This document shows, piece after piece, positions 5,317-61,427 of a DNA stretch of 64,000 nt. The stretch is from assembly GCA_964188305.1 (NCBI GenBank), contig OZ076892.1. One strand, 5' to 3'. The notes under the pieces are model-generated. The model did not search any database. It was not told the DNA's origin and saw only the letters and a program-made list of their open reading frames with translations. Positions within the stretch are counted from its first letter, which is position 1; each line of letters begins with the position of its first letter. The translations under genes and the position numbers were made by a program. Origin of the DNA: Podarcis bocagei (taxonomy: Eukaryota).

Positions 5317-5356
5317 TCGGACTGCGATCAGGACAGAACAACGCCTGGCAATACAT
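5317..5356 (-). CDS. Candidate proximal alternative first coding exon (MYCQALFCPDRSP, phase 1)
   Basis: CCACCATG start at 5356, in-frame upstream stop at 5395-5393, 40 nt to donor CGA|GTGAGA (ctcac 5312-5316); lies downstream on the minus strand of the CpG-rich patch at 5880-6250. Confidence 0.35.
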
Positions 5357-5879
5357 GGTGGGGGGAGGTGGTACATATACTGGGACTTTTCCTCAATTTT
5401 GATATGGGTTTTGTACACTGGGAATTATTCCCAGACACCAAACCCATGCTCACGCCACCCCCAATATCACTGAGAATCACATTTAACCCATAAGCGTACA
5501 TCGAAAGGGTGAAAAAGAAATCCTGTCCTCTTTGCCTCTCTTTAACGGTCCTGGCTGCAAGAAAGGAGGGATATCTAATCTGTGTTAAGGGGTAACTAAT
5601 CCATGTTAAGGGGTCTGGAGTATGCCCCCTATGATAAGGGAAATTTGAGAAACGGGTGTGTACAGGGGGGGAGCTTCCGATGAACAATGGTCCCCTTCAA
5701 CAAACTACAAAGAAAAGAAAGGGTGGGGGACAGGGGGCAGAAAGGGAGAGGAATAGGGGACACTGGAATTTGCAGTGAGATATTATTTTGGAGGGATAAA
5801 ACTGAAGCAGGGATGATAAATAGGATTAATATGATGGGGTGTGGGGAACCAGCCCCCAAGCTGCAGCATCCCTTCCCAT

Positions 5880-6250
5880 CCCCCAGCGGCTGCGCTTTGT
5901 TGGGGGGGGGCATCCGTCAGCCCAAGCGCCTGACAATGAAAATGGTTTCGAGCCACGGCTGCCGATCGATACTGTGCAGGGGGAGAGAGGGGGGCTGGAG
6001 CTACGGCAGGGCCAGGCCTCTCGCTCACTCGCTGGCTCTCTCGCCCTCCCCCCCACCTTTTCCACCCGACGATTTCTCCCTTCTCCTCGCTTCAGACGCA
6101 TTTCATTTTCTTTCCTATTCCATTCCCTGGTTTCTGCGTTGCAGCAGACTGGGGGGTGGTGGAATGGTGGGGGGGGGCAGGTGACATCCCCACCCTGTCT
6201 AGTCTCTCTCTCTTTCTCCTCTCCCTCTCTCTGTGTCACGATTTCGCAGT
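5880..6250 (-). promoter_or_regulatory. CpG-rich candidate proximal promoter
   Basis: Local CpG enrichment and GA/CT-rich tracts upstream of the 5356 candidate exon. Confidence 0.4.
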
Positions 6251-6940
6251 TCTCAGCATGCCTTGGCAAAGCTATAATAGTAATAATAATTTTTTTCAAC
6301 AAAAAAAAGCAATAACAGCAGCAAAACCTGGGGGAACAGCTGGACTTATTTCCTTCTCCCCCCCCCCCACCCTACACCATTAAACTAAAACCTGGACCAA
6401 GAACCAAGAAGTGACCAAAATCCCTTCTCTCTGGCCTCCAGAAGCCACTTACAAAGAGGCAGGTACCTCCACCGCCATCCTCAGTGGTGCAGGTGGGAGG
6501 AAGACTCCCTGCCAAGGTCACACAAATACAATGGCTGAGCTGGAAGCAGCGGCACAAGTCCTAATTCCCACCCCTCTCTCTAGCCCCACACTGTGCCACA
6601 AACCCATGGGTTTAGCTAGTCCACTGAAGACCCCATTCGCTCTCCTAGAGGTGGGAACAGCCCCCAAAGGTCAAGAGCTGAATCCCTGTCTTAGACAGGG
6701 ACTAGGCCAAGTTCTGCTTCCTTAGCAAACCCACCCGGCTTACCACAGTGTTCTCCACCAGTCGTATTTGCCCAGGAGTCTGATGCTGTCTCTTCTTCCC
6801 TAAATCCCCTTTTCCATCTTCCTACGTATCTGATCTTGGGCACCTTTATCTCCTTCTCCATCTCCCATTCCCCTAATGCCTAGTGCTACATGTATTCCTC
6901 TGCCTTCAACTACACACCTCCTCTCTCTATATAAACCCAC

Positions 6941-6984
<44 letters not shown>
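6941..6984 (+). repeat. (TTTC)n microsatellite
   Basis: Seen directly. Confidence 0.95.
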
Positions 6985-6986
<2 letters not shown>

Positions 6987-7412
6987 CTCCACATTCCACC
7001 TTCTGCCTCCCTTTGTCTTCAAAGCATTTCCCTAAGTCCATGTCTTTCCACTTGAGTCTTCCCTATACCCCGTCCTCACAAGACATCAGCCAGCCCTCAA
7101 ACTCACCTCCTGCCCTTCCCAACTAGTGTGGCTGTGTGTACACATTACATGCTTGAAAGGCTGCTCTTTGTCTCAATTCGGATCAAAGCCGGATTGGGAG
7201 GAAACGCATCAAAATGCAGTCTTTCATGAGAATCGGCAGAATAAATATGGATTGTGTCTAACATTGCGCATATACCACTTCCCAAACCAGCGGGGGGGGG
7301 GGAGGTGTCACTGGATGAAGAGTAAATAGGAGGGTATGCACAGACTGTATTGGTGCACACAGTATTCCCATCCTCACCAACAACCTTGTGAGGCAGCTTA
7401 AGCTCAGAGAGA

Positions 7413-7733
7413 GGGCTTGTCCACACCGCAACGATATGTGAATTTGTGACTGTCTCCCCATTAATGCAAGGGCGCAGTCACATGACATTCTCCCCATGCC
7501 AGTGTTTCTCACACCTTTCCCTTTTAAATTGCTGGGTGTTCTTTTGCAATCCTTAGAAAGTCTAAAATACCCAAGAACAACAAAAAAAAACCAAACCTGA
7601 ATTTAAAGGGGTGGGGGAAGGTCCTGCACAACATTAGGGTGGGGAGGACATAATGTTGGACACCCGCCAACATTAATAAGGAGACAGGTAGGTGCAAATG
7701 CACATTCCACTCTTGTGTAGTATGGACAAGCCC
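7413..7733. mobile_element. Palindromic MITE (PIF/Harbinger-like), TIR GGGCTTGTCCAYAC
   Basis: gggcttgtccacac...gtatggacaagccc; internally similar to the copy at 3210. Confidence 0.7.
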
Positions 7734-8479
7734 ATAGAATCTTGCCCCCTTCCAAAGAGTTTTGTGGCCGAGTAGGCATTTGAGCTTGGGTTTCCCACAT
7801 CCAAATCCACTACACCACATTGGTTTACTCTACAGTAGGTTGAAAGCTCTGTACTGTGCAGCAAGAGTGAGCAGAAGATAAATTGGGATCTACTGACAGG
7901 CTTTTCGCAGTAGAGCAGCAAGTGTTTCTGGCTCCCAGTTATTTAACAAGAGCAACAACAAAATGAGCCCCCCTTCCCACAGTTGAACTGCTGAAATGAA
8001 CAAAGCTTGGGGTCACTAGGAACAGATTTTTGTGTGGAGGGACTGTGAGTTCAGCTCAGTTCTGAAACTCAAAACGAATCCATTAGCTCGGCCGTTGTTC
8101 AGAGGCACCATGTTCTTTAATTCTACATCTTCTGCACCTGGTTGCAAAAGGTGGGTTTGCGGCTGCTAGTAAAACGCAAAGTAGATCCCATACTGTAAGT
8201 CTAAGGCCTGCCCTTCCCTGTTGTCCAGCACCCAGGACATACTGCAGCAGAATTAATATTAATGTCAGCTGCCCACCTTCTGCTTTTGCCCACCCACCCT
8301 GGGCCTCAAACCTCTCCCCGAAAGAATTTTGCAATCACAATGGCAGGCTGTTCACAACACTGGAGCCAGAAGACAGAATGTGTCGTTTGGGGAAAAGGTG
8401 GCTTCCTCTCTGTTGCCTATTGTGGGTTCAGGTGTTACCCCTAAAACAGGCTCACAACAACATGATCTCAAGCAAGCAC

Positions 8480-8580
8480 CTCTTCTCTCAATTTCGTTTC
8501 CCAGCTGTAAAATGGGAAGAGCGGCAACCCATCTTGCAGGGTTGTTGATGTGCAGATCACAAAGGCTGCAAAGTACTTTA
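8480..8580 (+). mobile_element. Ancient MIR/CORE-SINE remnant
   Basis: tttcccagctgtaaaatggg...cttgcagggttgttg resembles the MIR core. Confidence 0.5.
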
Positions 8581-8841
8581 CAAATCGTATCACAGCCACC
8601 AGTCACTTCCTTCTTTTCAGCCCGGGACAAAACACAGCAGAAAAGGAAAGATGGAGACACAGGAACCATGGGAAACCGAGGTGGGTCCAGTAGCGCCATC
8701 AGAGGCAGAAGTGCACAGGAGTACCTACAGATGCAGCAGGGTCTGCTTGCCACGTATCAAAGTAAGTGAAGCATTACCAGCTTAAGAAATCCCCCCGCCA
8801 TTATAGAAGAAGACCACAAAGTCCAAAGTCTAAAAATCCAA

Positions 8842-8990
8842 GCTGTAGCTCAGTGGCATCTACTTGGCCTACAGAAGGTCCCAGCCTCAATCTCTGGTGT
8901 CTCCAAATAGGGCTGAGATTGCCCCCTGCTTGAAACCCTGGAGAGCTGCTGCCAGTCAATGTAGACAATACTGAAGTCAGTGGGCCAATG
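8842..8990 (+). mobile_element. Squam3-like squamate tRNA SINE
   Basis: gctgtagctcagtgg...cagaaggtcccag...tgaaaccctggagagctgctgccagtcaatgtagacaatactga matches my recollection of the Squam3 consensus. Confidence 0.7.
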
Positions 8991-11710
8991 ACACCCATGG
9001 GACACCCATGGATTAGCATGGGGCCCGCAACCCATTGGGGCGTTCTCCAGCACAGCCTCATTTAAAGGAACAGGAGCTGTGTAAGAGGACTACTCACATT
9101 TTATTTCAGTTGGACCTAGGTGAGATAGCTTGCCAGAAGATTTCCCTGTCACTCTGCCACCTTTGGTGACTTCCCACATCTACCACCCAAGACAGCCACT
9201 TAATAGGGTTGTCCTCCCCTGAAGCCTGGGCCCGTTCCCCAAATTCTCCCCATGACCAGTCTCATCTGTAGGCACTCGTCACACAATGCACTCAAGAGGA
9301 GACACACCCTTGCACTGAAATGCATCTGTGCCCTGTTTTGCAAAGGACATAGAGACCTGGAGGGTGGGTGGCCATGCCAGCCAACGCATAAGTGTTTCTG
9401 CCAGTGGAGCATGTGCACCAAATTCCCTGTGTACATGTGATAGTGTGGTTTCTCTGTGCCAAGACGAGGACCTGCAAGGCGCTGGCCCTTGCTGGCTTTC
9501 GGCGACTGGGCCTCATGCTCCACCTCCTCCACACAATTTGCCCGATTGCCAGACCTGTCCGTCAGGCCCGCGTCGGCCGCTAGGAGCCATGCTGCGAGGT
9601 GGGGACGCTGCACCCTCAGGGGGTCGAGAGTAGGGTCGGGGGGGTCAAGGCAAACCCCCTCCTAAAACAAAGGGGGTAGTCCTATCTCTCCCCCCACCCC
9701 CCGTGCCAGAACAGGGAGATTTCCAATGTCTCTGTCTTGGGGTGGAAGGGGGGAAACACCACACCTGCTCTAACCACTAGGAGAACAACCCTCCACACAA
9801 AACCATATAAAGTGAACTCTAACTCATGTCAGACAGAACCTGGATACAACTCAGACCTTATATATGTGTGAGGAACAGATGCAGCAGGAAACAAACTTTC
9901 TGTCCTTGACTAGGGGGGAAGGCACACAACTCTCTGGGCTTATGGTTGCCATCTCCTCCTCACCCCTTGTCCTGGGTCTGCTCCCATGCCACTAAAAGCA
10001 GGCTGACACACAACACCCGCAGCTCTACCTAACACTCATCTCTATACCAAATGGAGCTTCACCTGATATATTTCAATGTATCAGGTTGCCATGAAATGCA
10101 CAGGAGTAGCAACCAGAAGAAAAGGTGGCAACCCTGCTCAGATCCACTTCCCATCCCAATGAACCAGCAGTTTCCCTTTGACTTTGGGCTGCGAGCAAAG
10201 CCCACCTGCCTAAACCTGCTAATTCCCATTCTCTGGATTTTCCAAGGCAAGCGCTGAACACCAGGTGCTCGGTGCTGACAGAAACTGACCCCCAACTGAC
10301 AATATGTGGGGAGAAAAGGGGGATATGAAAGCAGAGCTTTCAGGGAAAGCAGAGCAATAGCCTCCCAGCCATAGAGTCACTGCTGCTTAATGGGAGGGGG
10401 AAGCAAGAAGCAAAGTTGGGGCTCCCCCAGTGCTTCCACCTCCCTCCCCCCCCCCTCCCGCTGCCGGCTGCCCAAGATCCAGCCTTTTTTCTGAGGCTGG
10501 CAAGGAAGCAGCACCCCCCATCACTCCTGCTGGCGGCCAGGCCTGTCCTAGTAGAGCAGGCTCTGAGTTGCCAGTAATTAAAACCCTGTTAAACTTCATT
10601 AAGCAGCTCCACTTCCAACCTCATTAAATGATGATGAGGGGAGAGAGAGAGAGAGCGAGCAGGAAAGAGCGTGCGTAAATGTGATCACTCTCTAAACCTC
10701 AGCTTGATCAATCGCTTATCTGCTCTTTCTTTCTTTCTTTCTTCTTTCTTTCGTTCTTTCCATTTCATACCTGGGTCCTTTATTTTGTCCCCCTCTTAAT
10801 ACAGAAGCTAGGAACCCACATGATCTAGCCTCATTGTGTAATGTAAAGAGGATTAAAGCTTCACACAATAACTGAGTATAGGGTGTGTGTTTAAATAACA
10901 TGCTGTAGTCTAGAACAGGCATGGGCAGGATTGATTTTGGGGTTGGGGGGTTGCCTAGACCCCCGCCCCTAGTGTCGACCAAGCAAAGCCACCTGTGTGG
11001 TGGCAGCTCAGCGTCAGAGCCTCTTAATGATCCACATCACCCCTTACATCTCGTGCCTACAGAAGCAAAAACCTACATCTGAGCTACTAAAAAACAGAGA
11101 TTTTAACAGCCTGTTGGGTTTTGTTTTTTTAAGTATTTCTTCATTGTTTCTGAGTCATAAAGTGTTCCCAAATTACATCAGATAAGCCAATGATTTACCA
11201 TTAATGTCTGTAAGGGAGCATTTCAAAACTCCACAGTTCTTCACAGTGGCCCTCCCACCCACCACTCCCAACATACCAGCATGAAAACGTTCCAGCTCCA
11301 AGATTCTTAACCACAAAACTTCCCAAAGTGTCAGATTCCAAAGTTCTAAACTAGGAGTAGACAACCGGTGGGCCAGGAACTTAATCTGACCCCCTGAAGC
11401 TTTCCATCTGGCCCCCTTTGCCAACACAAAAGAGTGAGTCAGTAGCCCTCTTCAACCTGTTCAAAGGACACTGTGGGAATAAACTATGGAGGTCCTGGGC
11501 ACTGGCCCTGCCCTCAGTACTGCAAGGGTGGTGTGGCTTTGGCAGACCAGCACCAGGTTCATTTGCAGCAGACAACTGTAAAAGCAACTGGACCAGTCTT
11601 CCCTGTTTCTACCCCCATCCCCACTTACTACATACCCACCCACCCACCATGGGATTAGTTGCATGTTTGGCTGAATACACGAAGAAACCTTCTGGCAATC
11701 AGGAATCCTC

Positions 11711-12496
11711 TGTGGAGGATTCCCTGGTCCTGAATGGGGTAACTGTGCCCCTGAAGGACCAGGTGCGCAGCCTGGGAGTCATTTTGGACTCACAGCTGTC
11801 CATGGAGGCACAGGTCAAATCTGTGTCCAGGGCAGCTGTTTACCAGCTCCATCTGGTACGTAGGCTGAGACCCTATCTGCCTGCAGACTGTCTCGCCAGA
11901 GTGGTGCATGCTCTGGTTATCTCCCGCTTGGACTACTGCAATGCGCTCTACGTGGGGCTACCTTTGAAGGTGACGCGGAAACTACAACTAATCCAGAATG
12001 CGGCAGCTAGACTGGTGACTGGGAGCGGCCGCCGAGACCATATAACACCGGTCTTGAAAGACCTGCATTGGCTCCCAGTACGTTTCCGAGCACAATTCAA
12101 AGTGTTGGTGCTGACCTTTAAAGCCCTAAACGGCCTCGGTCCAGTATACCTGAAGGAGCGTCTCCACCCCCATCAGTCTGCCCGGACGCTGAGGTCCAGC
12201 GCCGAGGGCCTTCTGGCGGTTCCCTCACTGCGAGAAGCAAAGCTACAGGGAACCAGGCAGAGGGCCTTCTCGGTAGTGGCGCCCGCCCTGTGGAACGCCC
12301 TTCCAGCAGATGTCAAAGCGATAAACAACTATCTGACATTCAGGAGACATCTTAAGGCAGCCCTGTTCAGGGAAGTTTTTAACGTGTGACATTTTATTGT
12401 ATTTTTGGTTTTTATGGAAGCCGCCCAGAGTGGCTGGGGAGGCCCAGCCAGATGGGCGGGGTATAAATAATAAATTATTATTATTATTATTATTAT
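11711..12496 (+). mobile_element. Young 5'-truncated L2-clade LINE (ORF2 C-terminus + 3'UTR + (TTA)n tail)
   Basis: Translation VRSLGVILDSQLSM...SRLDYCNALYVGLP...LQLIQNAAARLV...HITPVLKDLHWLPV...RAFSVVAPALWNALP is typical L2 ORF2; uninterrupted to TGA at 12389; 3' stem-loop and (TTA)n tail. Confidence 0.95.
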
Positions 12497-12900
12497 CTGC
12501 ATGCAGGGTTCCCAAATCACAATCCTCACAAGAACAATTCTAAGCATATTCAGAAAAATGCATGAAGACTCTGGTGAGAGTAGAGCTGGAGAGCATAGCC
12601 CTACACACACCTTCCGTGGCTGATGCCCACATACACTCTTGCATGACTCAAGAATGCTACAAGATAGAGCCAGTGTGGTTGACCTTCAGCTTCCACGCCT
12701 TAATTCAAAATATATCCCCCTATTCAAAAAATAAACAAAAATAAGCCACTGAACATGTTTTTTAGACACAAAAATGTTCAAATCCAGCATTTCCAACTTC
12801 CAGGCCTTACATCCAAGGAGCTGTGGCTTAAGTTTACCCTTTCTTCACTAAGACCTTTTCAGCCTGAACTTTCCAGTGACACTCTGCCAATGTTCTATCC

Positions 12901-17600: not shown

Positions 17601-20600
17601 AGAGGACTCACTGTCCTCAAGTCACCCCCACAACATGCTATGAGCTTCATGGAAGTTCACAAAACTCATCTCACATGTGAGCAATTTGTAAATGATTCAA
17701 ACAATATGCATCTACATGAATCCCACCATTAAGACACATGTGCATCAAGTTCTATAGGATAGACTATACAAGCAGCCATTCACTGCTATGGGGAAAAGGA
17801 AAGCACTGCATTTGGGTACAGTTTTGCAACTTTTCCTCAAAACACACTTATAAGATGGGCCACTATTTTTATCCCCTATAATACATTTCAGGGAGGGGAG
17901 TGAACCTAAGAGACAAAAGGCCCCTTAGGACACCATTCGGGCACATGATGGTATCAGGGCAGTTACACATGATTTCAATACTGTTTGCACCTGCAAGAGT
18001 TTTGTGATGGCCTTACTGCTTCGTTTCCAATCAGTGCATGTCCTGCTGTAATATACCACTGAAATCCTGTAACTTTTTAATAGCACAAATTTTCTAGGGT
18101 TTGGGGTGGGGGTTGTCCCACTTTTGTGCACTATAGCCCCTCCAGGTAGTAGCAATGCAGCAGCATTGAGGAAGTATCACAGAACACTCAATAAAGAGGA
18201 ACAATGTGTGGATGGTCCTTTGTAAATCCACCACTAATGCACTGTTATTGCATCAACGACATGTTGCAGAATACGCTGGTTGAAAAACAAACCAACCACG
18301 AGTTTGTCTAAAACCAGGGTTTGGGTATCAGTCTCAAGCTGGCTAACCCAGTAGCTGCTCAATGTGCTTATCCATATGCTGCTCTCACTGCCACTAGTAC
18401 ACACACCAGCCTAGTGACAGCTCTCATGCCCACTGTTGTACAGCAGCCATTTTACCTTAGCTATCAGAATTAACATCCCCTGTGTCCAGCCTGTGACAGG
18501 GATGAAGAGAGAAAAAGAACAGAAAAAGGGGGCTACAGGGAGAGTTTTGGAACGTGAAAATTGCAAGAACTGGTGAAGGAGACCCACCAGGCTGAACAGA
18601 AAGGAGGACTGCAGAAAATTGGAAGAAGTAGCAGGATGGGAAATGCAAGCAGATGCAGAGATCAGAGAGGGTTCCTGACTCTGGGAAAGGTGTGCTGTCA
18701 GCAAGGCACAAGGTACCGTAATAGGGAAGATTCAAAGTAGGAGAAAGTATTGGTGCAGGCAAATATCTGCTCCTGGTGATTTCCTGGGTGAGCCATCACC
18801 CTGAAGCAACTTGCAGCCACTGTATTGTCGTCTCTCGCTTGCTCGGTCAACTTGGCAGCTTCCACACAAAATGTCAACAACCTGGCACACTTTGGGGCTA
18901 GGTGTGGGTGTTTTCTGTGGTGCTGCATCTGTTCTGAAATAGGTGTCACCCCAGAAACCTTTATTTGTAGCAGCACGGGAGTGAGGGGAAACAAGCTGAA
19001 ACAATTCCAGGGTAAGGGGAGAGAAAAGCATGAAAGCCAAAATATTTGGAATGAAGAGGAAAGAACTCAAGAGATGAGAAACTGATGCAGCTGGCAGGGT
19101 TGCACGTTCGGGCAAAAAAGAACAAGGGAAAGATCTGGGGACAAGGAGAGTGGAAAGGCTTGTACAATAAGGAAGGCAGATGAAATGGGAAACATAGTGT
19201 GGAGGTGTTAGAGATGAGTAGGGCACTTTACACAGGCCAGGAGGGCAGGATATTACCAATAGGTAGTGAAAACTGTGTAAGGTGTGCATGGGGATTGTAG
19301 AAGTGGGGAAAACAGGTGCACCCTCTGCAACATTGGCTTACATCCCAAAGCCAACACAATTTTTAGTGACACCAGGTCGACACATATATGTGTGGGCGAC
19401 TTCAAGGTGCACCCACCTCACGCAGAGATCTTCTCCAGGAGGAAAAGACAAAAAGAGATATGGATGGAGGAAGGTGGACAGAGACAGCAAGAGGAAGAGA
19501 GGAAAAGAAGCAGGCAGAGGCTAAGGGGTCGGGGACGGTGGAAAAGCTGTCTCTGCAAGAGAAGGTTTTTCACCCTGCCCTCATCTCCCCCCCCCCTTCA
19601 TACACAGAGACACACACACATGAGCCTCAGCACTGACCCCCCCTCCCATCACCAATGGCCAGTCCCTTGGGAGGCCTGTCCTCCTCCCCCCCCCAATCCT
19701 GCTGACCCTGGCGCGTGGCTGTGCCCGGAGGCTCGGCTGGAACAAAGGGCCCAGAGCTCGGCCAATCAGGGTGTGCAGCTCTCCTGCCGCTGACCTTTTT
19801 ATGATTATTATTTAAGGGAAAAAGCAGAGGCGAGGAGAGGAGAAAGGAGGGGAGGAGGCAGCAAAGGGAGGCGGGGGGGAGAGGGGAAGAGGACCGGAGC
19901 TTTGCAAAGACAAGCCGGCCCTCCTGCAGCCACTGTATAGAAATACCCCCACATGCACTAATCATCTCCCATCCCCCTTGCCCAGGCTCCTTATGAGTCC
20001 ATATTGTCTGGGATCAGCTAGGGCACAACCCAGCAAGGGGCACATCCCTGTCTGCCCGTGCCATAAGAAGAAACCGCTCTGCCCAGGATCTGAGCACAAC
20101 TGGATCGAGAGGTGTTGGAAATGACATGGCGATTCAGCCCCGGATACCATAGGAGAGCGAAGACACTATCAAGCCCAGTGCCATAGCCATCACTTGCCTG
20201 CATACATAACCCCACGCAGAATCCCCACCATACCACATCAGTTTGACTGTCCCATCTCACCAAATATCCCTCTTCTAAGAGAGGACCATTTGCAAGGGCT
20301 TCTAAGCACAGCTATCGAGCCTAGAGGGAAAGATCTGCCCACGCGGAGGAAGTAGGAGATTTAGGTATCGTATACAGCCATGCCTTTTTTTGACAAGTTT
20401 AAGCAGTTGCACCCCCTGAGTACGAACGTTAGTTTCTCCTCCATCTGTTTGCCTATCCTTTCTCTTTTAACCCAGTTATTTGGTGGCAGTCATTCATACA
20501 CACATCATAAAGGCATGTACCATGAGCTATTACCATCAGTTGTGCATGGTTAAAAATAAAGCACTTGCAAACATACAATGTCCACGAGAACCAAACTGTG

Positions 20601-20854: not shown

Positions 20855-21759
20855 GTCTACTCAGCTGACCAGCTTCTGGTCAAACAAATAGCTATATATC
20901 TGGTTTGAACGGATACATATCAGAGCATTCATAAAAGGCCTCTCACCATGTCAAAAAAAGTCAAATGTTTGGTGGTTTCACAATGCACTCCTTACAATGA
21001 AAATGGCTACATGCATCGACTGCTACCGGCACATCCTAAACAAGCTATTGTCCATCCGCTTTGGTGTTTAGGTTCTCAATATATGAAATGGAAATAAGAG
21101 CAACCTCTAAAGTACTTAGGCAGTAAAGTAGAGATTGCATAGCACTTTATGATGTGCTATATTATAAAATAATAAATTTCAGTCCAAAATAATGCACATT
21201 CATGGAATTTTTCCTTCCTTTCAGAAACTTTGTCCTTGAAATCCACACTCATTGAGGGCCTAGTTTGCTATTAGCAAATGTATTACTTGCCAGTGTCAAC
21301 TGGGTATATGGGAATTCAGTATATAACTTGTGCTCAGATTTTTTGACAGGTGCCTGCTTTGATTTTAATCAGCCCACAAAGCAAACTAAACGAGCTCCCA
21401 GCTACCAAAGCAATGTAGCCCAAATCAAAGTTTAGCCAAATGAAAGATTCAAAGCTGAAGTTCTCCATGGGTTTGAATCAAATCCCAAAAGCCATCAATA
21501 GGAATGGATGCTCAAGTCTGAAACGGAATCCGAAATACACTGTGGAGGCTCAGGGTCAGCTTGGGGGTGGCTTGCCTATTGAGTTACAGTGCCTTTCCGA
21601 ATTCTGCCATCCTGCGCTGGGTGATATCCAAGTCATAGTCAAAGCAGAAATGATTGAAATGATTGGACTTGGCATTCAGGACAGACAAAAGGAAATATTT
21701 ATCCACATTTATTCACATGGTTCAAAGATGGAGTTTCCTACTGTAACAGCCAACTTGCA

Positions 21760-22010: not shown

Positions 22011-24996
22011 AAGTCCACTGATTTCACCGGGTCTACTCTGTGTATGACAAACACTGGATATCACCCAATACATCTGGGGAGTTTAAATAAAATCATAGCA
22101 ACCTTCATCACTGCCAAATTCTTTCTCATCTTTCTGGCACTTAATATTACAAAGACGGGTGCCTACTGTCTGAAGAACAGCTCTGACCAGCTCAAAAGCT
22201 TGCAACCTTATGCCATCACCAAAACTGGTGAAATGAAGGTATTACCTACATGGATCTTTAAAGTTTCCAAAGACAACATTAAAAACTAGAAGCAACACAC
22301 TAAAAAGGCATGTTCCTAAACCTTAAAAAAAATCTTTTTCAAAATGTATTATTTTTTTGAATAGAGACATCACAATTTGAAATGCATGTTCTATCTACCA
22401 TGGGTTCTTTTATTTGACTTATGGAGCTAGGTAATGCTAAAAATGCAAAAGCAGCCTAGATCACAGCCTAAATCACAGGCAAAAACATGAACTGGATATA
22501 CGTGTCACTGTAAACAGACCACAAGACACTAAGGAGGCAGAACCTTGTGTAGAGATACCAGTGGCAAACACTCCTGCAAAAAAACACATTCACACATTGC
22601 ATGCAGGAGGGCATGGTGTAACTATCCTACAGCCACGGGATGCTTGTCCAACCATCTGGGCCTCTGCCTCCCACTCAGCTGACCAAGTACATATTATCAC
22701 GCCCAGAAAAGAAAAGGAAAACTGATTCCCAATAACGTTAAGTTCCCCTGAATTGATCTTAGTACCTAAAACCTTGATGGCTGCCCCATGGAGTTTTACT
22801 TTATGGTTATTTTGCCAGTGCACAACACAAATGTAACATGCCAAGACAAGGTCCACAATGCGCATTTCCCCCTCGTGCACAGCCATCCAGGTTCCACACC
22901 CACCACGAAAAGAACTTTGGCTGGCTTTGTGCCATCCCACGACACCCCACATCCAGACCTAGATGTAGAAGGCGCCAAGGATGGAAGGATGGACACACAC
23001 CAAACACACTGACTTCTCTGACCAGAGAGAGAGAGAGAGAGAGAGAAAGAGAGGGAAGGAAGGAGCATGAGAGGGTGGAGGTGGGGGCAGTTACTACAGG
23101 CTGGAAAATCGATTTCTGCCTCTGAACAAGCTTCGCTTCCCAGATCTCCGGGTTCATTAGCACGGACTGGGCTTGACACCAATACAATTTCCACACCGCG
23201 CTGGCTGCAGCAGAGCAGGGGGGGAGGGGTGTGCATGCAGGGCCAGCTCTGCAAAGCCACTTCTCTGAACCCCCACCACCCACCCGCCAGCCATAGAACG
23301 TGTCAGAAACAGATTATAAAACTGCCTCCTGTCGTTCCCCCCTCCCTTTGGGTCGCCCCGTTCTTGCCTTTACCCTTTCTCAGGGGTTGCTTCTCTTCCT
23401 ACCCACTGATGCACCAATGCCCACATTTCTCTTCATGCCCTGACCCTTCCCTATCCCTGATACTCCTAAATCTCCAGCTGTCAGGTCTACCAAGGAAAGG
23501 AAGCTCTCCCAGAGTATAGTTGGTTAGAGTAGGGGAAATCAGTCATCAGGACGCCTGGGTTCTCTCCCATGAGGTGGGGAGCGGGAGGGGAAGGGGAAGA
23601 AGGAGATCTACCAGTCAGCGGTTATTGCTAAATTTTTCATTAATAAGCATCCACATCCCACCCCAAAAATATCACTGCCGTCCCAGTTCTTACCCAGATT
23701 CTTACCCAGCACATTCCATATAATCCACTGCCTCATAATTTTAGGAGGCAGAAGAGAATTTTCCCCCAAGGTCACCTAGAAAAGCCCTTCATAGACCTCG
23801 GGAGCCCCAGCTCTGGAGACAGCCCTCCCCTACCTCCCTTCTCTAACTACTAGACCCCCATGCACCCCCCTCTCCCCTGTTCTGAAGGCCCACCACTTCA
23901 AAGGAACACATCCCCACTTATCATTTGAGTTCACCGTCCATAGTCTAATGGTCGAGAGGTGCAATCCAAAAGTCTATTTTTAAGATGCGCCCAGACATAA
24001 TAGTGAGGTGTGTAGATGGGGGGGAGCATAGCAGAATGAAATAGCTTGACACAGGGGGGCCAGAGGAACTATACATCTTACGCTGACAACAAACAGTAAC
24101 TAGAATACAGAGGAAATGTCTAAAATCGGAAGAGGGGAGCAGTGAGCCACAAAGCAGACCCCAAATGCTGTGGGGTGTTAGGGGGGACATAAATCCCCCT
24201 TAAACACAAGGCAACGGTCCTGTTTCATTTCCCATCTGAAGCACCCCATCTCAAGGAAGACAGAGAATCTGAACTATTCACAATTCCAGAATTTAACTTG
24301 CAGAATTGGTGGGTGGAGGAGGGTGGGCATAAGCAGACACGGGGTGGGGGGAACTAGTCAAACTTCAACAGGAGCTTATTGTTAGAAGCATTTGACTAGA
24401 TGTGGGGAAGATTTGGAGGGAGGATCTGAAGCATAAAACCAGAAAATATTGGTGGGGTGTTTGGCATGATTGCACTAGAGTAACCATTTACCAGGGTTGC
24501 ACCTGAAACTCGAACAGGATATTATTGGGGGACAATTGATGAAAAGGGGTACTTATGGGAGGCTGTGAACAATTTGACAGAACTGGCTGGCATTGGAGAA
24601 GAGGCAGGTGGGGTTATTTGGGGGCACCTTCCCAGACTGGATCTCACAGGTGCTTTCTGCCCACCCCCACCCCCTAATTCTCTCTGGGCTAGAAAAATCC
24701 TCCCCCACCAGCCCACCACCTGCCTAGCCCTAAACCTTACTTGGTGTTTCCCATATACCGAACAGAGGAAGAACCTCATAGGGAAATAATAGCAATATTA
24801 TAAAAATAACTTGATGATTGGGGTGGGAGCAAAGGCTTCACCGGTTCCCCCCACCCAGCAAAAGTGAAAGTGGGGGGTCTCTCTTTTCTTTTTTTCCTCC
24901 CCCTTTCTTTTTTCTCTTTTTTGCCCAGTCTTCTTCCACCGGCGTCTGCGTGCTGTTGGTTTCGGCGGCTGCCTTTGGCTTCTTTTCCCTGCTTAC

Positions 24997-25120
24997 CACC
25001 CACCCCCACCGACCCCCACCCCCTCCGTCTATCGACCGCAGGATGCCGGCGCCGGAGGTTCGATACGGAGCAGTGACACTCCGGATCAATACCGCATGAA
25101 TAAAAACCCCGCTCGCCCAT
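24997..25120 (-). CDS. Candidate alternative first coding exon (MGERGFYSCGIDPECHCSVSNLRRRHPAVDRRRGWGSVGVG, phase 1)
   Basis: Strong Kozak context GCGGAGATGG at 25120; 124 nt open to donor GTG|GTAAGC (cttac 24992-24996); same phase as the 25341 exon; CpG-rich. No homology recognised. Confidence 0.35.
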
Positions 25121-25340
25121 CTCCGCTTTCTTCCTCTCCCTCTTTCCCCTTTTTCTCCCCTCCTTTCCCCCTCTTTCTCTCTCTCTCTCTTCTCGCCTGC
25201 AAGAGTTGGTGGCATCTCTCTCATTCTCTCTCTCTCGTCTTTTTCTTTCCCCCTTTCCCTTCCTTTTCCCCATTATGTTCCTTGCTGACTTGCCGGCTGC
25301 TTTCTTTCTCTTGCCGCCCCCTACACCCCCTTCTTCTTAC

Positions 25341-25440
25341 CGTTTGCAGAGCGCAGGGCGAGCGGCGACTTGAGGCGCCATCCGTTCTCCGGGCCGGCGG
25401 ATCTTTGGAAGACCAAGGGGACCGGCAGTGGGATGAACAT
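25341..25440 (-). CDS. POU2F2: Alternative first coding exon of POU2F2/Oct-2 (33 codons + 1 nt; MFIPLPVPLVFQRSAGPENGWRLKSPLALRSAN)
   Basis: Seen: ATG at 25440, open frame to a strong donor ACG|GTAAG (cttac at 25336-25340), phase 1 ending in G, inside a CpG-rich patch; possible acceptor CAG at 25452-25450. Recalled, not searched: teleost pou2f2 isoforms begin MFVPLPVP..FQR...WRLKSPLA.RS and then (D/E)IRMSKP, and the human first-exon/exon-2 junction is also phase 1 (G|AA ATA AGA ATG). Octamer clusters in the window fit a POU2 locus. Confidence 0.75.
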
Positions 25441-25855
25441 GTCGGGGACCTGTGAGTGACACTCCGCATAACCCCACGGAGGGAAAAAAATATAAATATA
25501 TATATAAAAGGGTGGGTGGGTGAGTGGAGAGAAAGGGGTGGCGGGTGGGCGAAGTGGGGGGGGACACATACACACACACGCTGGACAGGTGACGATCGAC
25601 CGAGGATGACAATCAACCCAGGGTGGGGGGGGAGTGGAAATCTCTCTCTTCTCTCTCTCTCTCTCTCTCCCCCCCCCCTTCGACACACACTGCTCCGCTT
25701 TCTGCACTTACACACGTGCGTGCATGGGTGTGTGCACGGGCAAGTGCGTGTGTGTTTGTCCGTGCTGCAAGGACGTGTGAGGTTTGGGCACTACAGCCGG
25801 ACAGTGTGCATCGTTTTAAGGCTTTTGCAGAAAAGGAAAAGGGGGTGCGAGTGCG

Positions 25856-25860
<5 letters not shown>

Positions 25861-25892
<32 letters not shown>
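25861..25892 (+). repeat. (GT)n microsatellite
   Basis: Seen directly. Confidence 0.95.
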
Positions 25893-25896
<4 letters not shown>

Positions 25897-28180
25897 CACT
25901 GCGTGCCCCCCCCGACAGTGCCTGTGTGTGTGTGTTGCCCCTTTTCACTAGATCAACGGGGGTCCCTGAGCTCCGTCCGAATCTTTCTCTCCCCCCCACT
26001 TCACCTCGCCCCCCTTTTCCATCACACACACACACACAGCCTACGATTCCCACTTTATTGTCTTCCCTGTTATCTCCCCCCCCCCTTGCTTCTACCTCCC
26101 CTCTCTCCTTCCAACCACCCCGCTTTGACAAATGACATCCGAGCCAGCGACTTGCCGTCCCTCGCAATCCCCCCCGCGGGGGGCTCCGCTACCAACATCT
26201 CCCCCCCCCCTTCCTTCTTCACTCTTTGCACAAATACAGTCCACCCAGACAAAAGCAATTATTCCTTAGGTACAAGCTTAGTGTGGGTGTTGAAAGGGGG
26301 GAGGGGAAAGAGAGTATGGATGAATTACTGACACCCCCCCCCCTCAAGCAAATAATCTTCCTTCGCTTGCCTTCTTTCTAAAAAAAAAAAATTAACACAC
26401 ACCCTACACCTGACACTTCCACTATCCCTCTTTTTCCAGGGCTAAAAATAAACCCCTTAATCAGCTTCATAAGGCTCCTCCATCCCCTTACTTAAATTAA
26501 TGTGTGTGTGTGGCCCCAAACCAGGCACTCAGCGCTCACAGCCCCTTCCAGGTTTATTATTAGAAGAAGAGAGATTTACACAGATAATTACTACTAGGCA
26601 CTGTAATAATAAAGGGGTGACCTTCCCCACCCCCAAAAAATAGCCCATGGGATATATAATGAGGCCAAGAGAGTTTCTGTAATAACTCTTTGACTTCTCT
26701 CCAGGAGACTCACTTTCTTTTACTTTCCTTCAAGGGGGAAAGCAGAGGCACCTGTCTGTTCATCCCCTCGTCTCTCTCTATAAGGCTTTGGGGAGGGACG
26801 TGTGTGAGAAAGCGACCTCTTCTGTGATCACTTTGGTTCCTGGCTCAGGATCACACCGTGCTTCTCTCCCCACCCAGGCCTTATCACCCATTGAAGGAAT
26901 TGGCACATTTTTTAAAAAATGCACATGCATTCAGATGTTGCTTCTCTAGACGATATTGGTTTCCTTATTTTCCCCCAACCGCCTTCCCCCAACAGTGTCA
27001 GGTCTGTGTAAGCTGCAGTTGGGGTCTCAACCCCAGCCAGCGCTGCTTCCTCGGAACTGGCAGGGTGGCAAGATTTGAGACAGACAATAGTTTCAAAAGG
27101 GAGTTCACCAACATGGATCGCTAAAGGCTTCGTCGCCTGTCATCGACACACAAATTTCTCCTGCACCCACCCTGCTGCCACGCTCCAAAGGGGTTTGGTA
27201 GGATTTTGCAACAAGGCTGGGGGGGAAAGCCCTGCCAGCCCTGTCTAACTAGAGGACCGCTTTTCCGAAGTGACTTCAACCCTCTGGAGTGGAGGGATGC
27301 TACAGGCTAGTTGGTACCTCTTTCTCCTGCTACTACTAACCCTCACTGAACCCCATCCGCCATACTTCCAGTTTGGTGTTTCTGCATCAAATCAGCCCTT
27401 GGAGAAACTGTTGTGTGGATGAGCTGTGAGTCACAGCTAGAGCCAGCCAAACCCCAAAACTTGAGTCCTGCCCCAATATTGCAGGATATTTCTTTTTTCC
27501 CATTTACTCTCTGGGTGCAGTTGGATTCTTCTCCCCACCTCCATGCACATATCCCTTATTACTCTATTATGATCTTGCAAGTCCTGTTCAACTGCATTTC
27601 AAACAAGTGGTCCAAAAGGAGATCAACAGCAGATACCATTATCTGTGTCCCATTGAACTCTCTTTTCATGTATCATTTGATTCCCCCCCCCCCTTTTTTT
27701 TTTATTCCAACAGCCCTGGAAACATGGAGAGAAAGTAGATAGAGGATGGATGCAAAGATAGAAATGTGTGGGGAGAGAGCGCGGAGTGGAAGATAGACAG
27801 ACAGACAATATATGAAAGGGAGGGGGAGAGAGAGACGGAGAAAGGGATGGACAGAGAATGGGATGGAAATATATTAGTGAGAGGCAGAAGGAGAGAGGAG
27901 AGGTGTATATATGGTGTAATATAGATAGATATCAGATTGATGGAGGGGCAAATAGATGAATATGCATGGGGCAGAGAGGGAAGGAGAGAGGGGGGGAGAG
28001 AGAGAAAGAAGAGGAAAAAATAAGAGTTGGTGGGATAGAAAGAGTGCAATTATTTGATTCAGTACCACAGTGCTGAGGTCAGAAATTAACTGCCGCTAGC
28101 CTTAAAGTGGGGGTGTTAATATGTTTTTTTTCTCTCTCTCCTTTTCTCCCTGTCTCTAGGTCACAGAAGATGGAATGTAC

Positions 28181-28226: not shown

Positions 28227-31200
28227 ACCAACCAACCAAGACTATTATAGTAGACATTTTCCAAAATAATAACAAAAGCCAAACTGGGGATGATGGCTGT
28301 TTTTGGATAGTGTTTGATCTCACCTGAAGAAATTCTCTTTCTGGAGTGAAGCTGGAACAGGGTACATGTGCACCCCATTTCAGCCTTCAAAGGGAAAAGG
28401 AAGGTCTGTAGATGCTAATAATAAACCACCGTAGGAAAGAGGAGCTGAGTTAATCACAAATCCACCCATCCAAAGAAACAAGGCAGTCACCTAACAGGAG
28501 GACTTGGTTCGTTTCCAGGAGAGCTGCTTCAGCCTGCATTGGAATTGCCCACCAAATGTAAATCCTGAACAGGCTACCTTGAAAATTACTCCTTTCCACG
28601 TTCTAATCTGCATTTAACAACGCTTAAAAGTATTGCTTTGTAGATGAAAGGGAGTTCTTAGCAGCACCTGCGAAAATGCCCTTATAACCGCTGGTCCAAT
28701 GAGGTGTTGCCCCCTCTTCTATTTCATCCCAAACAAACTAAAAGAAACACACTGCTCTTTAAAAATGTGCAGCATGGATATGCCATTTCCAGTCTCCACC
28801 CTTTCTGCACCAGTATCTACTCTACTGGGCATCAGAAGGATTGTTTCAATGTGATTTATTTTTATATTGTAACTACTCTAAACCAATGGGAATTGGGTGG
28901 GGTGGAAATAAAAAATATTCATCCTAAATACATCGCTAATCTCAAATTTAATTGCTGGCAAAAGTATTTATTGTTTTGTTTATTTATTGTTTCCATTGTT
29001 TCCACCTTTCTACAACAGAACTGGTGCATGGAGTAAGAGGTTTAAACAAGGAGACGTGGAACAGAAAAGTGTATGGAATAATGAGTAAACAGAGGAAGGC
29101 TTTATCCCTATAAGCCAGCATCCGAAGAGTTGAGCTCAATGGCTTGTGGGTGGGTCCCTGCTTGGATTCTGGACTACAGTATTTATTTCTTGAAACAGCA
29201 AAATTTTCTCCTCCGTGTCATATTACAAACTATTTAGTTTCAAAAATGACTTCTTTCTAGCATGCCAAACTTCCTTGGGTAAGAGGATCCAGTTGTGCCG
29301 TTCTATGGATGTTGGCCTTAATTTCTCTCTGTAGACAGATCATATAGATGTGTGCATACACCTGTTTGCTTTTTCTTAAATAATCCAGCTTTTACATCGC
29401 TATTTGTGCATTCAAACTTCAAATATAATGGCACGCAATTAATTAGCATGCAGGTAATAGCTACGTGCAGACTCCAAGTAAGGGGTGGGCATTCTACGTT
29501 TCCATCTGCATCACACAAGATGGATGGGAAGGAATATCCTATCCACACCACACAGTGCTAATGCGGATCCAATCAGCAATGAAGCGCTGGGCACTGCATG
29601 CATGATTCCCAATCCAGTATCTGGAACTGTATGTATAGCTGGGTGCTGGCATCCAAACAAAAGATCTGCTCATGTAGCAATTTTGTAGCGTAAACAGATC
29701 CTGATCCAGAAGATGAACCTGCATTATGTATGGATACTTCTTGCTGGATTGGTTAAACTTGTATATCCTTTTTCTGTGAACTGATTAATCCAGAGCAAGT
29801 AGCACCAACAACTTAGATGGATAAGAATCATCACTAAACATGCATACACACTCTTTGGTCACTTCAACCATGCAGATTACGTGTACAAAAGGTTAATTGA
29901 AATGAGAGAGAGAGAGAGAGAGAGAAGCCATTCTCTATTAAATATTATTTAGAAAACATTATTGCTATCCTGCAATGTACAAGATGTTACTTTGCAGTTC
30001 TAGAGTTAGATACGGTATGTCTTTTGCATGTATTAAGATACTTCCTGTCTTCATTTAGAATTAAAAACTGGGAAACAAGAAATCTCTTTCTACCCCTACC
30101 GTATCATATTTGTTTACCATTTAAAAGTTTATTGTAAAAAGATGTGCAATTTCAGCCTTTCCTCCTGTACAACTTAGCATCCTTACTACAACCTGGGCCT
30201 ACTTCAAAGAAATGGAAGGATCTAAAGGACTATGATGCCGTGGCTTACAAGCTCAATACAAAAGAAATAAAGATTTGGAAGAAAAATTCAATAAGTGATC
30301 TAATAGAGCAATTAATGGACCCTGTGAAAAATTACCAAGAAATCTGGAATGAACACTCTTTTCCAGTTTTTCATTCCAAATCTTATTAAGATTTGGTTGG
30401 TTCATTTTATCTTTTTAAAATGCAATTTGCTAATTTGGAGGCAATAGTGGGGAAATCTAGAAAGAGGTTTGGAGGAGGTGATAATTTAAAGAGAGAAAGA
30501 GAGATTGAGATTTAATCAGAAATAGTTCTCCTCCTACAGAAAGTAACATACAATTAAAAGAGGAAATAAAAGGAACAAAAAGAATGGAAGATGGGATTTC
30601 TTTGTTGCTGCGGAACTCTCGCTGGGATATCGTCAATGAATGGGGGGGGGCATCATTCTTTGGCTGTCTTCCACTCTATCTTCTTTTAGGGGATAGGGAG
30701 ATACCTGCAAAGCGTTTTAGCCTCATTCCCCAGTTCCTAAAAAAGGGAAGGTAGGAAAGTGGATGTGATATTTGCAAAAAGATTGCTGTAGTGGGAAACT
30801 AGTAAATATACAGAGGAGTTTTCTCATGTAAGACATGAAAGAGAAAATATTTGGGGTAAGCTTTCATCAATAGGGGGCCGGGCCTCCATGTTCAACTTTG
30901 CTTTATCCCACACATGGGCAATGAGATCAGCTTGGTTTTTTTAGAGTGATCCTTTATGACTTTTGGGGAAAGGTGTCATCCTGAATTTTTCCACCGAAAT
31001 TCCACTGCAGTAACCTGTGCCTTTTAACATGATCAGAAATTGTACAGTTTGATGCTTTACACATTAAAAAAATGTTCAACGAAACAATAAAGCCAATTTC
31101 AACCCACCCTGAAAAATAAGTAATCGGAGACTGTCACTTATTTCAAAGTACAGTATTGTGGATTCAGTGGGCCTTGTTAAGAAGATAAGACAACATGCAC

Positions 31201-38625: not shown

Positions 38626-38793
38626 NNNNNNNNNNNNNNNNNNNNNNNNNNNNNNNNNNNNNNNNNNNNNNNNNNNNNNNNNNNNNNNNNNNNNNNNNNN
38701 NNNNNNNNNNNNNNNNNNNNNNNNNNNNNNNNNNNNNNNNNNNNNNNNNNNNNNNNNNNNNNNNNNNNNNNNNNNNNNNNNNNNNNNNNNNNN
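38626..38793. other. Assembly gap (168 N)
   Basis: Run of N. Confidence 1.
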
Positions 38794-38818
38794 CAACTGG
38801 ATACCACAACACCTGGAT

Positions 38819-38820
<2 letters not shown>

Positions 38821-38883
<63 letters not shown>

Positions 38884-38968
38884 TTATTTATACCCCGCCC
38901 ATCTGGCTGAGTTTCCCCAGCCACTCTGGGCGGCTTTCAATCAAGTGTTAAAAACTATACAGCATTAA
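38821..38968 (-). mobile_element. 3' terminal fragment of the same L2 family with (AAT)21 tail
   Basis: ttataccccgcccatctggctg...ccccagccactctgggcggct is the reverse complement of the tail at 12419-12470. Confidence 0.9.
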
Positions 38969-39495: not shown

Positions 39496-39634
39496 GCCTA
39501 GCTCAGTTGGTAGGGCATGAGACTCTTAATCTCAGGGCCGTGGGTTTGAGCCCCGTGTTAGGCAAAAGATTCCTGAACTGTAGGGGGTTGGACTAAATGA
39601 TTGCCATGGTCCCTTTCAACTGCACAATTCTATG
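39496..39634 (+). mobile_element. tRNA-Lys(CTT)-derived SINE
   Basis: tagctcagttggtagggcatgagactcttaatctcagggccgtgggtttgagcccc retains the CTT anticodon loop, followed by the same tail. Confidence 0.85.

Positions 39635-50529: not shown

Positions 50530-50563
<34 letters not shown>
50530..50563 (+). repeat. (GT)n microsatellite
   Basis: Seen directly. Confidence 0.95.
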
Positions 50564-50564
<1 letters not shown>

Positions 50565-54951: not shown

Positions 54952-55004
<53 letters not shown>

Positions 55005-55340
55005 TAACTGCTATACCTACAATTCCAAAAGGTTCTGTTTTAAAGATACTGTACAGGCTGGATGTATCTTGATACATCCATTTACAAATCAATCTGCTGT
55101 TTACGGATTAACTGGATCTATATATTTACAAGCAAATCCATCTTTTTCTAGCTACATTTTAAAAACTTTTCAACAACTGTCATTTATAACTACCCTTATT
55201 GATTTGCAAAAAGATCGTTATATTTACATCTGGAAGATGCAGATTTAAAAATAAATTATCTAATGGGGAAATCAAGTTTTAGAAAGAGTGGTAATTAAAT
55301 TGACTGCCTCCCAGTTAACATGCATCGATTTGTAAATGAA
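54384..55340. promoter_or_regulatory. Candidate intronic enhancer: octamer quartet plus Onecut/Forkhead-like motifs
   Basis: ATGCAATT 54384, GTTTGCAT 54393, ATGCAAAT 54413, ATGCAAAC 54423, ATTTGCAT 54881; ATYGATTTGYAAA three times at 55080-55337; TRTTTAC at 54698, 55098, 55123, 55221. Confidence 0.55.
54953..55001 (+). repeat. (TA)n microsatellite
   Basis: Seen directly. Confidence 0.95.
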
Positions 55341-58300: not shown

Positions 58301-59433
58301 AACCCTTTCGTACACACACAGGGCACACACCCATTATCACTTAATGCAGATTAATTACCCCATAGTGAGCTTTAATCACACTGTACTCACAACCCAGTGA
58401 TAAAAGGCTGGGAGGGGGGTGTTCACCCTTTCAATCCATGTTTATGGATGAAGTAAAAGATTCTAATCCACATTAGCGAACAAGGAGGTGTTAGTCCCCC
58501 CCCCCGATTAATTAATATGGAGCACAAGCGTTTGAACTTGAGTGCACAAGATTAGGGTAATGAAAGAATGATAGAAGGTTAGAGTTCTTTCCAGAGTTTG
58601 ACTTAATCTTTATACGTGTGGTGGCAGTTCCAGTCTATTTTGTGAGGATTAATCTAGGAAAATACAGGTGTTTCCCCATAAATAATCTGAACCAAAACTG
58701 TGTGGTCTTTTTTATGCGTTCAAGGAAACTTACCAGCCCCACAACTGACATGCCAATTCAGACACACAAGGAACAGAAAGGGATGCAATCTATATAGGAA
58801 AATGTAAACTCCCATAGATGACAAATAGATGGATTATGCACACCCACGGGGGCAATTTGTACACTTGCAGGGACATAAGACACACACACACACACATCTC
58901 AAATTGCAGAGGCCTGAATGGGGATATTTAAGAAGAATTAAAAGCTGTTGTGTCACCCAACAATGCAACTGGCAGGGGAAAGGACTGTTACAAAACTCTT
59001 TGCGGCTTCTGCATTTATTAGGTTTTTGCAGAACCTACTCCAGAGTAATTTCCACTTCTCCCTGTCACAAAAGTAAGACCTGTGAATTATCTACCAGCGC
59101 TGCTTACGGGTAGACTTGCAACTGCTTAAAGAAAAATGCAACAGTGCTGTTGGTGCTTTAAGCAGCCAAGAGGTGAAAATTTGGTGTCTTAAATGAACCC
59201 ACTGACAAAGCACAGGGGGGAGGTCAGTGGCAAGCAGCCTAGTATGTTGCAAGCTTCACTTACACCAGTGCCCACCTGTCAGGACTAAGGGGGTCTTTAC
59301 AGCATATAACCACTGCTCCCAATTTCCCCATGGCAATGTCCTGTAAGTGCCCAGCCCATCTCACCCCACAAGAAAAGCCCAGTTAGTCATTTCTGAACTC
59401 CAAGTAACTATGGACAAGTTAGGGAATGCCAAT

Positions 59434-59435
<2 letters not shown>

Positions 59436-59470
<35 letters not shown>
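59436..59470 (+). repeat. (GA)n microsatellite
   Basis: Seen directly. Confidence 0.95.
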
Positions 59471-59472
<2 letters not shown>

Positions 59473-61381
59473 CGCCAAGGATATGCCAGGCTCTGGGACA
59501 GCAGACCAGAAGGCATCCCTCAATTCGCTCACTCTCTAAAAACTCAAGAAACAGAAATAGCATCTGTTTTGGAAAACTGGGACGGTGTTCCAACTTGGCC
59601 TGGGAGACAGCTATCGCACCAAACCTGAATTTGGGGAGTAGGTGGCTCTGGATTTGGGGGTTCAGGACGGCTGAAGGTAACAGCCACACCCCTAGATCCA
59701 TTAATCTTAACCCTATTCTTAGGAGATGTGTTCCCTCCTATCTCCCTTCCTCACATCCCACACACGCAATTTCGAAATTTTTGTCCATCGTTCTTTTGGC
59801 TCTATCTTTCTGTCTCTCTCTGCCCCACTGAATCCAGACCACTGAACCCCCTTCCTTTACCAGGAGCTCCCCTCTCTTCTATCCAGCGGTCTCCTTTCTT
59901 TCTTACCCAACTCTCCTCCCTGCCTCAGCCACACACCCTACCCCCCCATATCCACCTCCTCTCACCTTCCCCTCATATAGGTCCCCTTCTCATACACTCC
60001 CCCACCCCGAAAAAAACACAGCCCCGTCAGAATCTGACCTCTTCACCCATCCAGCCACTACCCCAGGTCTCCCCTGCGCCCCCCCCCACGCTCCCACCTC
60101 CTCCAGATCCTGGCAATATCTCTCCCTCCACACAATAGCTGCCATGGGCTGCTAATAATTATTAATAACATTCTTCCTTTCCTCCCTCTTCTCCACCCCC
60201 ACCCCGTCCATGGACAAAAGAAGAGTCCAGTTCTCGTTGTATGTATCTGCCTCCCCCTCCTCGCTTCGGCCATTGCACCTTCTTCCCCCCCCTCCAACAA
60301 CCTTCACTTTCTCCCCCCCCCCCACCGGTTCTTTGGACAATCCAAACCATTCCATCTTCGGTTCGCACACACACACCCCGCATTATGCAACTTGAGTTTA
60401 TAATAGAGAGGGGTCTAATATACTCACTTATATCCCAATAAACACAGGACACCCCCCTTAGTGTATGAAAGCAATCGCTGCTAATGCACAGCACAACCCC
60501 CCCCCCTTTTCGGGGGCGGGCGGCGGGGGGGTTAGGAATCCAAATATTGCAACACATTTCCTAACAATATATGCCCGCTTTGCAAAACCGTAAACGCCGG
60601 AGCCACAACCCCCCATCTCCTCAGGTTCCTTCTGTCTATTCCTTCTTTTTTCCCCTCCCTTCTTTCTTCCATCGCCAGAGCATCAAAAGCCGAGCCACCG
60701 CCACCGAAAAGCAGAGAGACATTTACAGAAAATCCTCTACAGCGTTTTCTCTGTCTTCTGATTTTATTTTCATCCGTGCAAAAAAAACCTATATAGATAT
60801 ATATTTTTTAAACATTCGCTCAGTGCACAAAGCCATTTGCAAAAGGAAAGAACGGCCAGCAAATATCATTTTTTGCCATTGCAAAAAACGCCTCCCCTTT
60901 GCAATGAATAAAAATGCCCTTTAAAAACACGCCTGTATCATTTTTGCATTTTATTTGTTTTTGTAAAAAAATAAAAATAAAATGCATTTTTATATATGCA
61001 TCTCTCCGTTATTATTTTTCCCTCTTTGCAATTTTTTTTGTCCGTTTCCTTAAAGGCTGAGCCACAGACACCAGCAAAAATAATATGCCAGGGAGAGGAA
61101 AAAAAGAAAGCTCTTGGAAGGAACAATTGCAGCTGCTGTGTTGAGAGACGAAGAGAGAGAAAGGAATAGACTGCCTTGTGTGTGTGTGTGTGCGTGTGTG
61201 TGTGTGTGCAATAGACCAGCTGCTGCATTAAGCATTTTGCAATCAATAAAGAGCGGGTGAGATTTATGCAAAGCGCAGATATTAATATGCAAAGTTTTAA
61301 AGATTTTTAAATGGGAGAGAGAGGGAAGGAGACAGGGAGGAGGAGGCGGGGTGGGGGGGATTGCATAGAGACTGCACCTAC

Positions 61382-61427
61382 CTCTGCTTCCATCGGTGGG
61401 CGCAAGCTGACTCCTCCATGCGCGCAT
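61382..61427 (-). CDS. Candidate coding end of the distal first exon (MRAWRSQLAPTDGSR, phase 1); may instead be a non-coding 5'UTR exon
   Basis: Donor GAG|GTAGGT (acctac 61376-61381) just downstream of a CpG-island promoter. The ATG at 61427 gives 46 nt (phase 1); ATGs at 61419 and 61393 give phases 2 and 0. Confidence 0.35.

Follow-up and report, generated by a model that had tools for sequence, protein, structure and literature searches.

A candidate multi-promoter 5' region, probably of POU2F2, in the lizard Podarcis bocagei

The window analysed here is a stretch of 64,000 nt from the lizard Podarcis bocagei (assembly GCA_964188305.1, contig OZ076892.1), in which four short minus-strand units, designated c1 to c4, had been proposed as alternative first exons of POU2F2, the gene for Oct-2. 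According to the original prediction, each unit has its own promoter and its own ATG, all four leave their donor in phase 1 (phase being unit length modulo 3), and the choice among promoters exchanges the N-terminal peptide of Oct-2, making the four an array of cassettes. Comparison with other squamates points to a different picture, and the locus would best be read as a 5' region with several promoters, of a kind already known, rather than as a four-member cassette array. The elements on which this reading draws are a pair of adjacent promoter-like blocks holding c2 and c3, a conserved distal block around c1, and a short cassette-like exon that lies between them.

Results

The four ATG...GT strings are present at the positions claimed for them on the minus strand: c1 at 61427-61382 (46 nt, donor GAG/GTAGGT), c2 at 25440-25341 (100 nt, or 33 codons plus 1 nt, donor ACG/GTAAGA), c3 at 25120-24997 (124 nt, donor GTG/GTAAGC) and c4 at 5356-5317 (40 nt, donor CGA/GTGAGA). 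Each is open and each has a length of 3n+1. Self-comparison of the window found no transposon copies at the units. Stretches of at least 200 nt over a putative start were taken as CpG island (CGI)-like when GC content was at least 0.5 and the observed/expected CpG ratio (o/e) at least 0.6. One such stretch, 61231-61711, spans c1 (GC 0.59, CpG o/e 0.65), and another, 24835-26297, spans c2 and c3 together (GC 0.56, CpG o/e 0.64). Donors were scored with a rough matrix, at a cut-off of 8 or 7 bits depending on the count, and within the two CpG patches no minus-strand donor other than those of c1, c2 and c3 reaches 7 bits.

A large protein search, run with a plus-strand open frame spanning c2 and c3, had a single hit: KAG8143482.1, annotated in the cobra Naja naja as a partial hypothetical protein. 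The cobra locus encoding it (L003) is colinear with the window from 18.6 to 33.7 kb through eleven conserved blocks. Two conserved blocks contain the proposed units. Block A (25336-25496, minus strand) comprises a TATA-like run at 25496-25484, the 15-mer ATGCGGAGTGTCACT at 25469-25455, and c2 with its donor. Block B (24997-25135, minus strand) comprises an A/T-rich run, the 15-mer ATCCGGAGTGTCACT at 25086-25072 and the donor GTG/GTAAGC, and contains c3. Identity between lizard and cobra rises and falls abruptly along this segment: it is 57% upstream of block A (25560-25497), 33 of 37 positions across the TATA-like run and 15-mer (25496-25460), 97 of 100 in c2 and 45% directly past the GTAAG. 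Across the spacer it is 37%, in block B 127 of 139 (25135-24997; 117 of 124 in c3 itself), and past the c3 donor 44%. The donors predicted at 25341 and 24997 therefore coincide with the points at which conservation ends. Read on the plus strand, both sharp edges are CTTAC/C, as expected of a minus-strand donor but not of a plus-strand acceptor.

The two blocks have one further feature in common. A 15-mer, ATsCGGAGTGTCACT on the minus strand, occurs once in each, is identical at 14 of 15 positions between A and B and is conserved in cobra; the local alignment score that it produces was reached in only 2 of 1000 shuffles. In both blocks it sits some 25-35 nt downstream of the conserved A/T-rich run, and it may be an initiator-region element. 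We considered and rejected the idea that A and B are long tandem duplicates, as the 15-mer alone is common to both. We also rejected the cobra plus-strand model (KAG8143482.1; L003 10001-13742) as an explanation for the conserved blocks: it is partial and of low complexity, it crosses the unconserved spacer, and the block edges misfit plus-strand acceptors. No Pfam match was found for this protein, and the gene model, which runs antisense to the conserved blocks, is probably spurious.

As a possible coding first exon, c2 is the best of the candidates. Its ATG, open frame, 100-nt length and donor are all retained in Naja naja, and the three substitutions between the species comprise two synonymous and one non-synonymous change in the c2 frame as against none and three in each other frame, a pattern that, with only three changes (p ~0.16), is no more than suggestive. 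The claim that c3 is a coding start did not hold up, given that cobra has AGG in place of the ATG, has lost the next ATG as well, carries a 1-nt indel and has a weak donor; c3 is probably non-coding. Word searches for proteins carrying the c3 or c2 peptide found none, in a search limited to proteins of 91-289 and 70-224 residues and hence uninformative on full-length proteins.

For the distal unit, the open frame surrounding c1 served as the query of a word search, which led to two open frames called on Logan contigs. These contigs, L001 (1125 nt) and L002 (3102 nt), are unspliced and colinear with window positions 61716-59647, and their overall identity of 75-77% indicates that they derive from other lizards. 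The 250 positions of 61450-61201 are identical at all 250 in L002 and at 245 in L001. Identity is 86-98% over 61700-61451 in L002 (this interval lies mostly past the contig end of L001) and 50-75% in the flanks of the block in both. The conserved block around c1 (61201-61700, minus strand) consists of a promoter- or 5' leader-like part, the unit c1 and a stretch of some 180 nt 3' of the donor. The leader-like part (61700-61451) holds a CCAAT-like box and the ATGs of upstream open reading frames, and the 3' stretch (61201-61381), which is rich in TTTGCAT-type near-octamers, is invariant in the two other lizards.

Within c1 there are three ATGs, at 61427 (phase 1), 61419 (phase 2) and 61393 (phase 0), lying 46, 38 and 12 nt from the donor, and the first of these has a weak context (CCCATGC). 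All three, together with the open frame, the length and the donor, are invariant across the three lizards, without a single substitution among the 46 positions. By these alignments, c1 is part of an element under strong constraint, although that constraint does not follow the outline of an exon and is without codon wobble. A conserved acceptor-like site at 61452/61451 raises the alternative that c1 could instead belong to an internal exon of 70 nt.

Between the distal and proximal blocks lies a feature that the original prediction did not include, a cassette-like internal exon of 53 nt (33695-33643, minus strand) that has a polypyrimidine-CAG acceptor and, as its donor, AAG/GTCAGT. It is identical to cobra at 50 of 53 positions, with the donor unchanged (6/6), the acceptor conserved and the flanks at 37-62%. 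Entered in phase 1 or 2 it meets a stop, and entered in phase 0 it is open, so that it behaves as a frame-closer for the first two c1 ATGs.

On its minus strand, the whole window contains 1277 open ATG..GT units of up to 130 nt in phase 0, 1317 in phase 1 and 1221 in phase 2, or 15, 20 and 16 when restricted to donors of at least 8 bits, and the plus strand yields similar numbers. Open ATGs in all three phases precede the donors of c1 and c2, and in two phases those of c3 and c4. With several phases available at each donor and phase-1 units so abundant, phase 1 was picked, as had been suspected when the units were proposed, and their common phase reflects chance plus selection rather than a signal. 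The unit c4 has little to set it apart from this background: its donor is weak (5.3 bits), an open phase-0 ATG lies 20 nt upstream, and its local o/e of 0.48 falls short of the island definition. Proximity to a CpG-rich patch, claimed for every unit, is found for c1, c2 and c3 and is true of c4 only in the loose sense that a 291-nt patch lies about 500 nt upstream. The unit c4 is probably a chance match. The proposal that the minus strand carries several promoter-like candidates for 5' exons, each conserved separately, is supported for c1, c2 and the c3 block, and the count of four is not. About 700 nt upstream of c4, a strong donor (AAG/GTGGGG, 8.5 bits) occurs at 6057 on the minus strand, within a small CGI-like patch at 5872-6162.

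The assignment to POU2F2 was approached through peptides. We take POU2F2 exon 2 (EIRMSKP...) to be entered in phase 1 and the exon-1 peptide of mammalian Oct-2 to begin with MVHSSMGAP, and in no frame of the window did we find these mammalian exon-1 or exon-2 peptides. In a search for an MVHSSMGAP-like exon, minus-strand 9-mers matched at no more than 5 of 9 positions and none of those was then followed by a donor. A search for Pfam domains among the 150 longest open frames of the window gave noise only.

An assembly gap at 38626-38793 lies between c1 and the other units, adjoining an (AAT)n run and a SINE-like tail. It is more than 13 kb from every unit and is crossed by no unit or reading frame; the microsatellite and SINE-like tail at 38800-38960 probably caused it. 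Nearby, at 39496-39564 on the plus strand, an Rfam tRNA match of 42.8 bits that ARAGORN did not report is probably the tRNA-derived head of a SINE. Elsewhere, a block of about 140-170 nt at 19690-19830, some 99% identical in cobra, contains three ATTGG (inverted CCAAT) boxes and an A/T-rich run and is promoter- or enhancer-like. Further non-coding blocks shared by lizard and cobra at 73-86% identity (22990-23293, 21262-21524, 27845-28168, 28369-28468 and 30510-30607) are without splice-shaped edges and are probably enhancers. On the plus strand, an open frame of 323 residues at 11418-12389 resembles the C-terminal part of a LINE reverse transcriptase, and a Pfam search with it gave no significant match.

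Discussion

We favour, at a probability of roughly 0.55, the interpretation that the window covers the upstream portion of a single gene on the minus strand, with several promoters and with 5' exons that would all splice to an exon lying left of the window. Blocks A and B would then represent twin adjacent core promoters, with transcription starting, to judge by their motifs, in or near the shared GAGTGTCACT motif, and with an A/T-rich element some 25-35 nt upstream of that motif in each. From block A, the c2 ATG would be the first AUG, following a leader of about 20 nt, and the out-of-frame ATG at 25469 would fall at or before the start site. From block B, the c3 ATG would lie upstream of its own start site, and the product would be a non-coding first exon. 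The distal unit c1 may serve as a regulated leader, with AUGs in three frames and a weak context at the first, while inclusion of the cassette would close the phase-1 and phase-2 frames. Under such an arrangement, promoter choice could alter the N-terminus in two cases at most, c1 with 15 residues and c2 with 33. No less likely is that the exons serve chiefly as regulated 5' leaders and that translation begins in the common exon.

Several observations weigh against a multi-promoter gene of this form. The start sites are placed from motifs only, and the support as a whole comes from sequence comparison. No coding sequence of POU2F2 was found in the window, and the identity of the gene leans on presumed exon structure and on layout. 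Linkage of c1 to the other units crosses the assembly gap, conservation of the c1 block runs about 180 nt beyond the donor and so marks no exon edge, and the sole database relatives of the c1 frame are unspliced contigs of genomic type. Moreover, the block B donor is weak in cobra, at 2.3 bits as against 8.1 in the lizard, and synonymous change is nearly absent (0 of 46 positions changed in c1 and 3 of 100 in c2). Such near-invariance of synonymous sites suggests constraint at the level of DNA or RNA rather than coding.

The last point bears directly on the reading in which translation starts at the phase-1 ATG of c1 as well as that of c2, with distal and proximal promoters giving different Oct-2 N-termini and c3 and c4 dropping out. 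This we regard as a tentative alternative and an unlikely one. Conservation of both ATGs, both open frames and both donors is what it would lead one to expect, as are the in-frame balance of changes in c2 and the position of the c2 ATG as the first AUG under the inferred start site. Set against these are the weak context of the c1 ATG and the two out-of-frame ATGs that follow it, a coding test based on too few substitutions, and synonymous sites more nearly invariant than coding constraint by itself can account for. The phase assigned to the next exon is furthermore an assumption, and the blank from the word searches for the c2 or c3 peptide also counts against translation, though only weakly in view of the length filter. 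A more elaborate form of the idea, in which c2 is a squamate-specific, conserved coding first exon whose 33 residues replace MVHSSMGAP, and in which promoter choice between it and c1 varies the Oct-2 N-terminus by way of twin TATA-plus-initiator promoters sharing a 15-nt element, strikes us as distinctly improbable.

The exons might also be real but part of a transcription unit other than POU2F2, for instance a long non-coding RNA or an adjacent gene. The window offers nothing that identifies POU2F2, and the cobra annotation offers only a hypothetical protein on the opposite strand, with no POU2F2 exon within 10 kb. However, the cobra model is a low-complexity open frame laid over an unconserved spacer, and three features of the lizard locus match mouse Pou2f2, namely the late ATG of the distal exon, the short cassette that breaks the frame, and the position of the proximal promoter, tens of kilobases further downstream. 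The gene is probably POU2F2 because its layout matches that of the mouse gene, a likeness of layout and not a homology test, and we consider assignment to a different unit unlikely on balance.

Slightly less credible is the view that the conserved blocks are regulatory elements acting as DNA, whether enhancers or promoter-proximal sequences, in which the ATGs and GT sites are incidental. Conservation at the nucleotide level without codon wobble agrees with it, as do the continuation of the c1 block through the donor into a motif-rich stretch and the presence nearby of other conserved blocks that are not exonic (19.5-20.0, 21.3-21.5, 23.0-23.3 and 27.8-28.2 kb). Yet blocks A and B both end within a few bases of a consensus donor, and the 53-nt block keeps acceptor as well as donor, which argues for minus-strand splicing across the region. 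That all four units are functionless chance ATG..GT strings is, despite more than 1000 such units per phase on the minus strand, extremely improbable and refuted for c1-c3 as sequence elements, since three of the four lie in blocks of 94-100% identity over deep squamate divergence; for c4 alone, chance is the likely explanation.

Among known systems, clustered variable first exons such as those of the protocadherin and UGT1A genes consist of large paralogous coding exons joined to constant exons. The likeness of the lizard locus to these is confined to the idea of an array of promoters each with a first exon; unlike theirs, the lizard units are tiny, unrelated save for one 15-mer and mostly not demonstrably coding, and they are not a member of that kind. 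A closer parallel is human TCF4 (PMC3137626), which likewise has several promoters with first exons of their own, spliced to a common exon, and in which some first exons carry an ATG. TCF4 differs in having documented protein isoforms, whereas the lizard units are known from DNA alone and at most two of the four keep their ATG across species.

The closest comparison is with mouse Pou2f2, in which several alternative promoters of one gene are already known, and the lizard locus represents no new kind of system. In mouse spinal cord, transcripts of the gene begin some 47 kb upstream of the B-cell start site, at the distal exon E1X. An ATG lies at the 3' end of E1X, and its frame is broken by an optional exon of 61 bp, E1b, so that translation must then start at the exon 2 ATG (Harris et al. 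2019, PMC6561314). In the lizard, the distal candidate c1 lies 36 kb upstream of c2 and c3, its ATGs are near the 3' end within a conserved, CpG-rich block, and the 53-nt frame-closing cassette between c1 and c2/c3 resembles E1b in form only. The proximal region differs in having two adjacent exon-like blocks, neither of which encodes the MVHSSMGAP of mammalian POU2F2. The coordinates given here can be used to annotate the 5' end of the lizard gene, and the twin proximal blocks with their common 15-mer provide a compact test case for tandem core promoters. If confirmed, the layout of distal promoter, cassette and proximal promoter would be at least as old as the ancestor shared by mammals and squamates.

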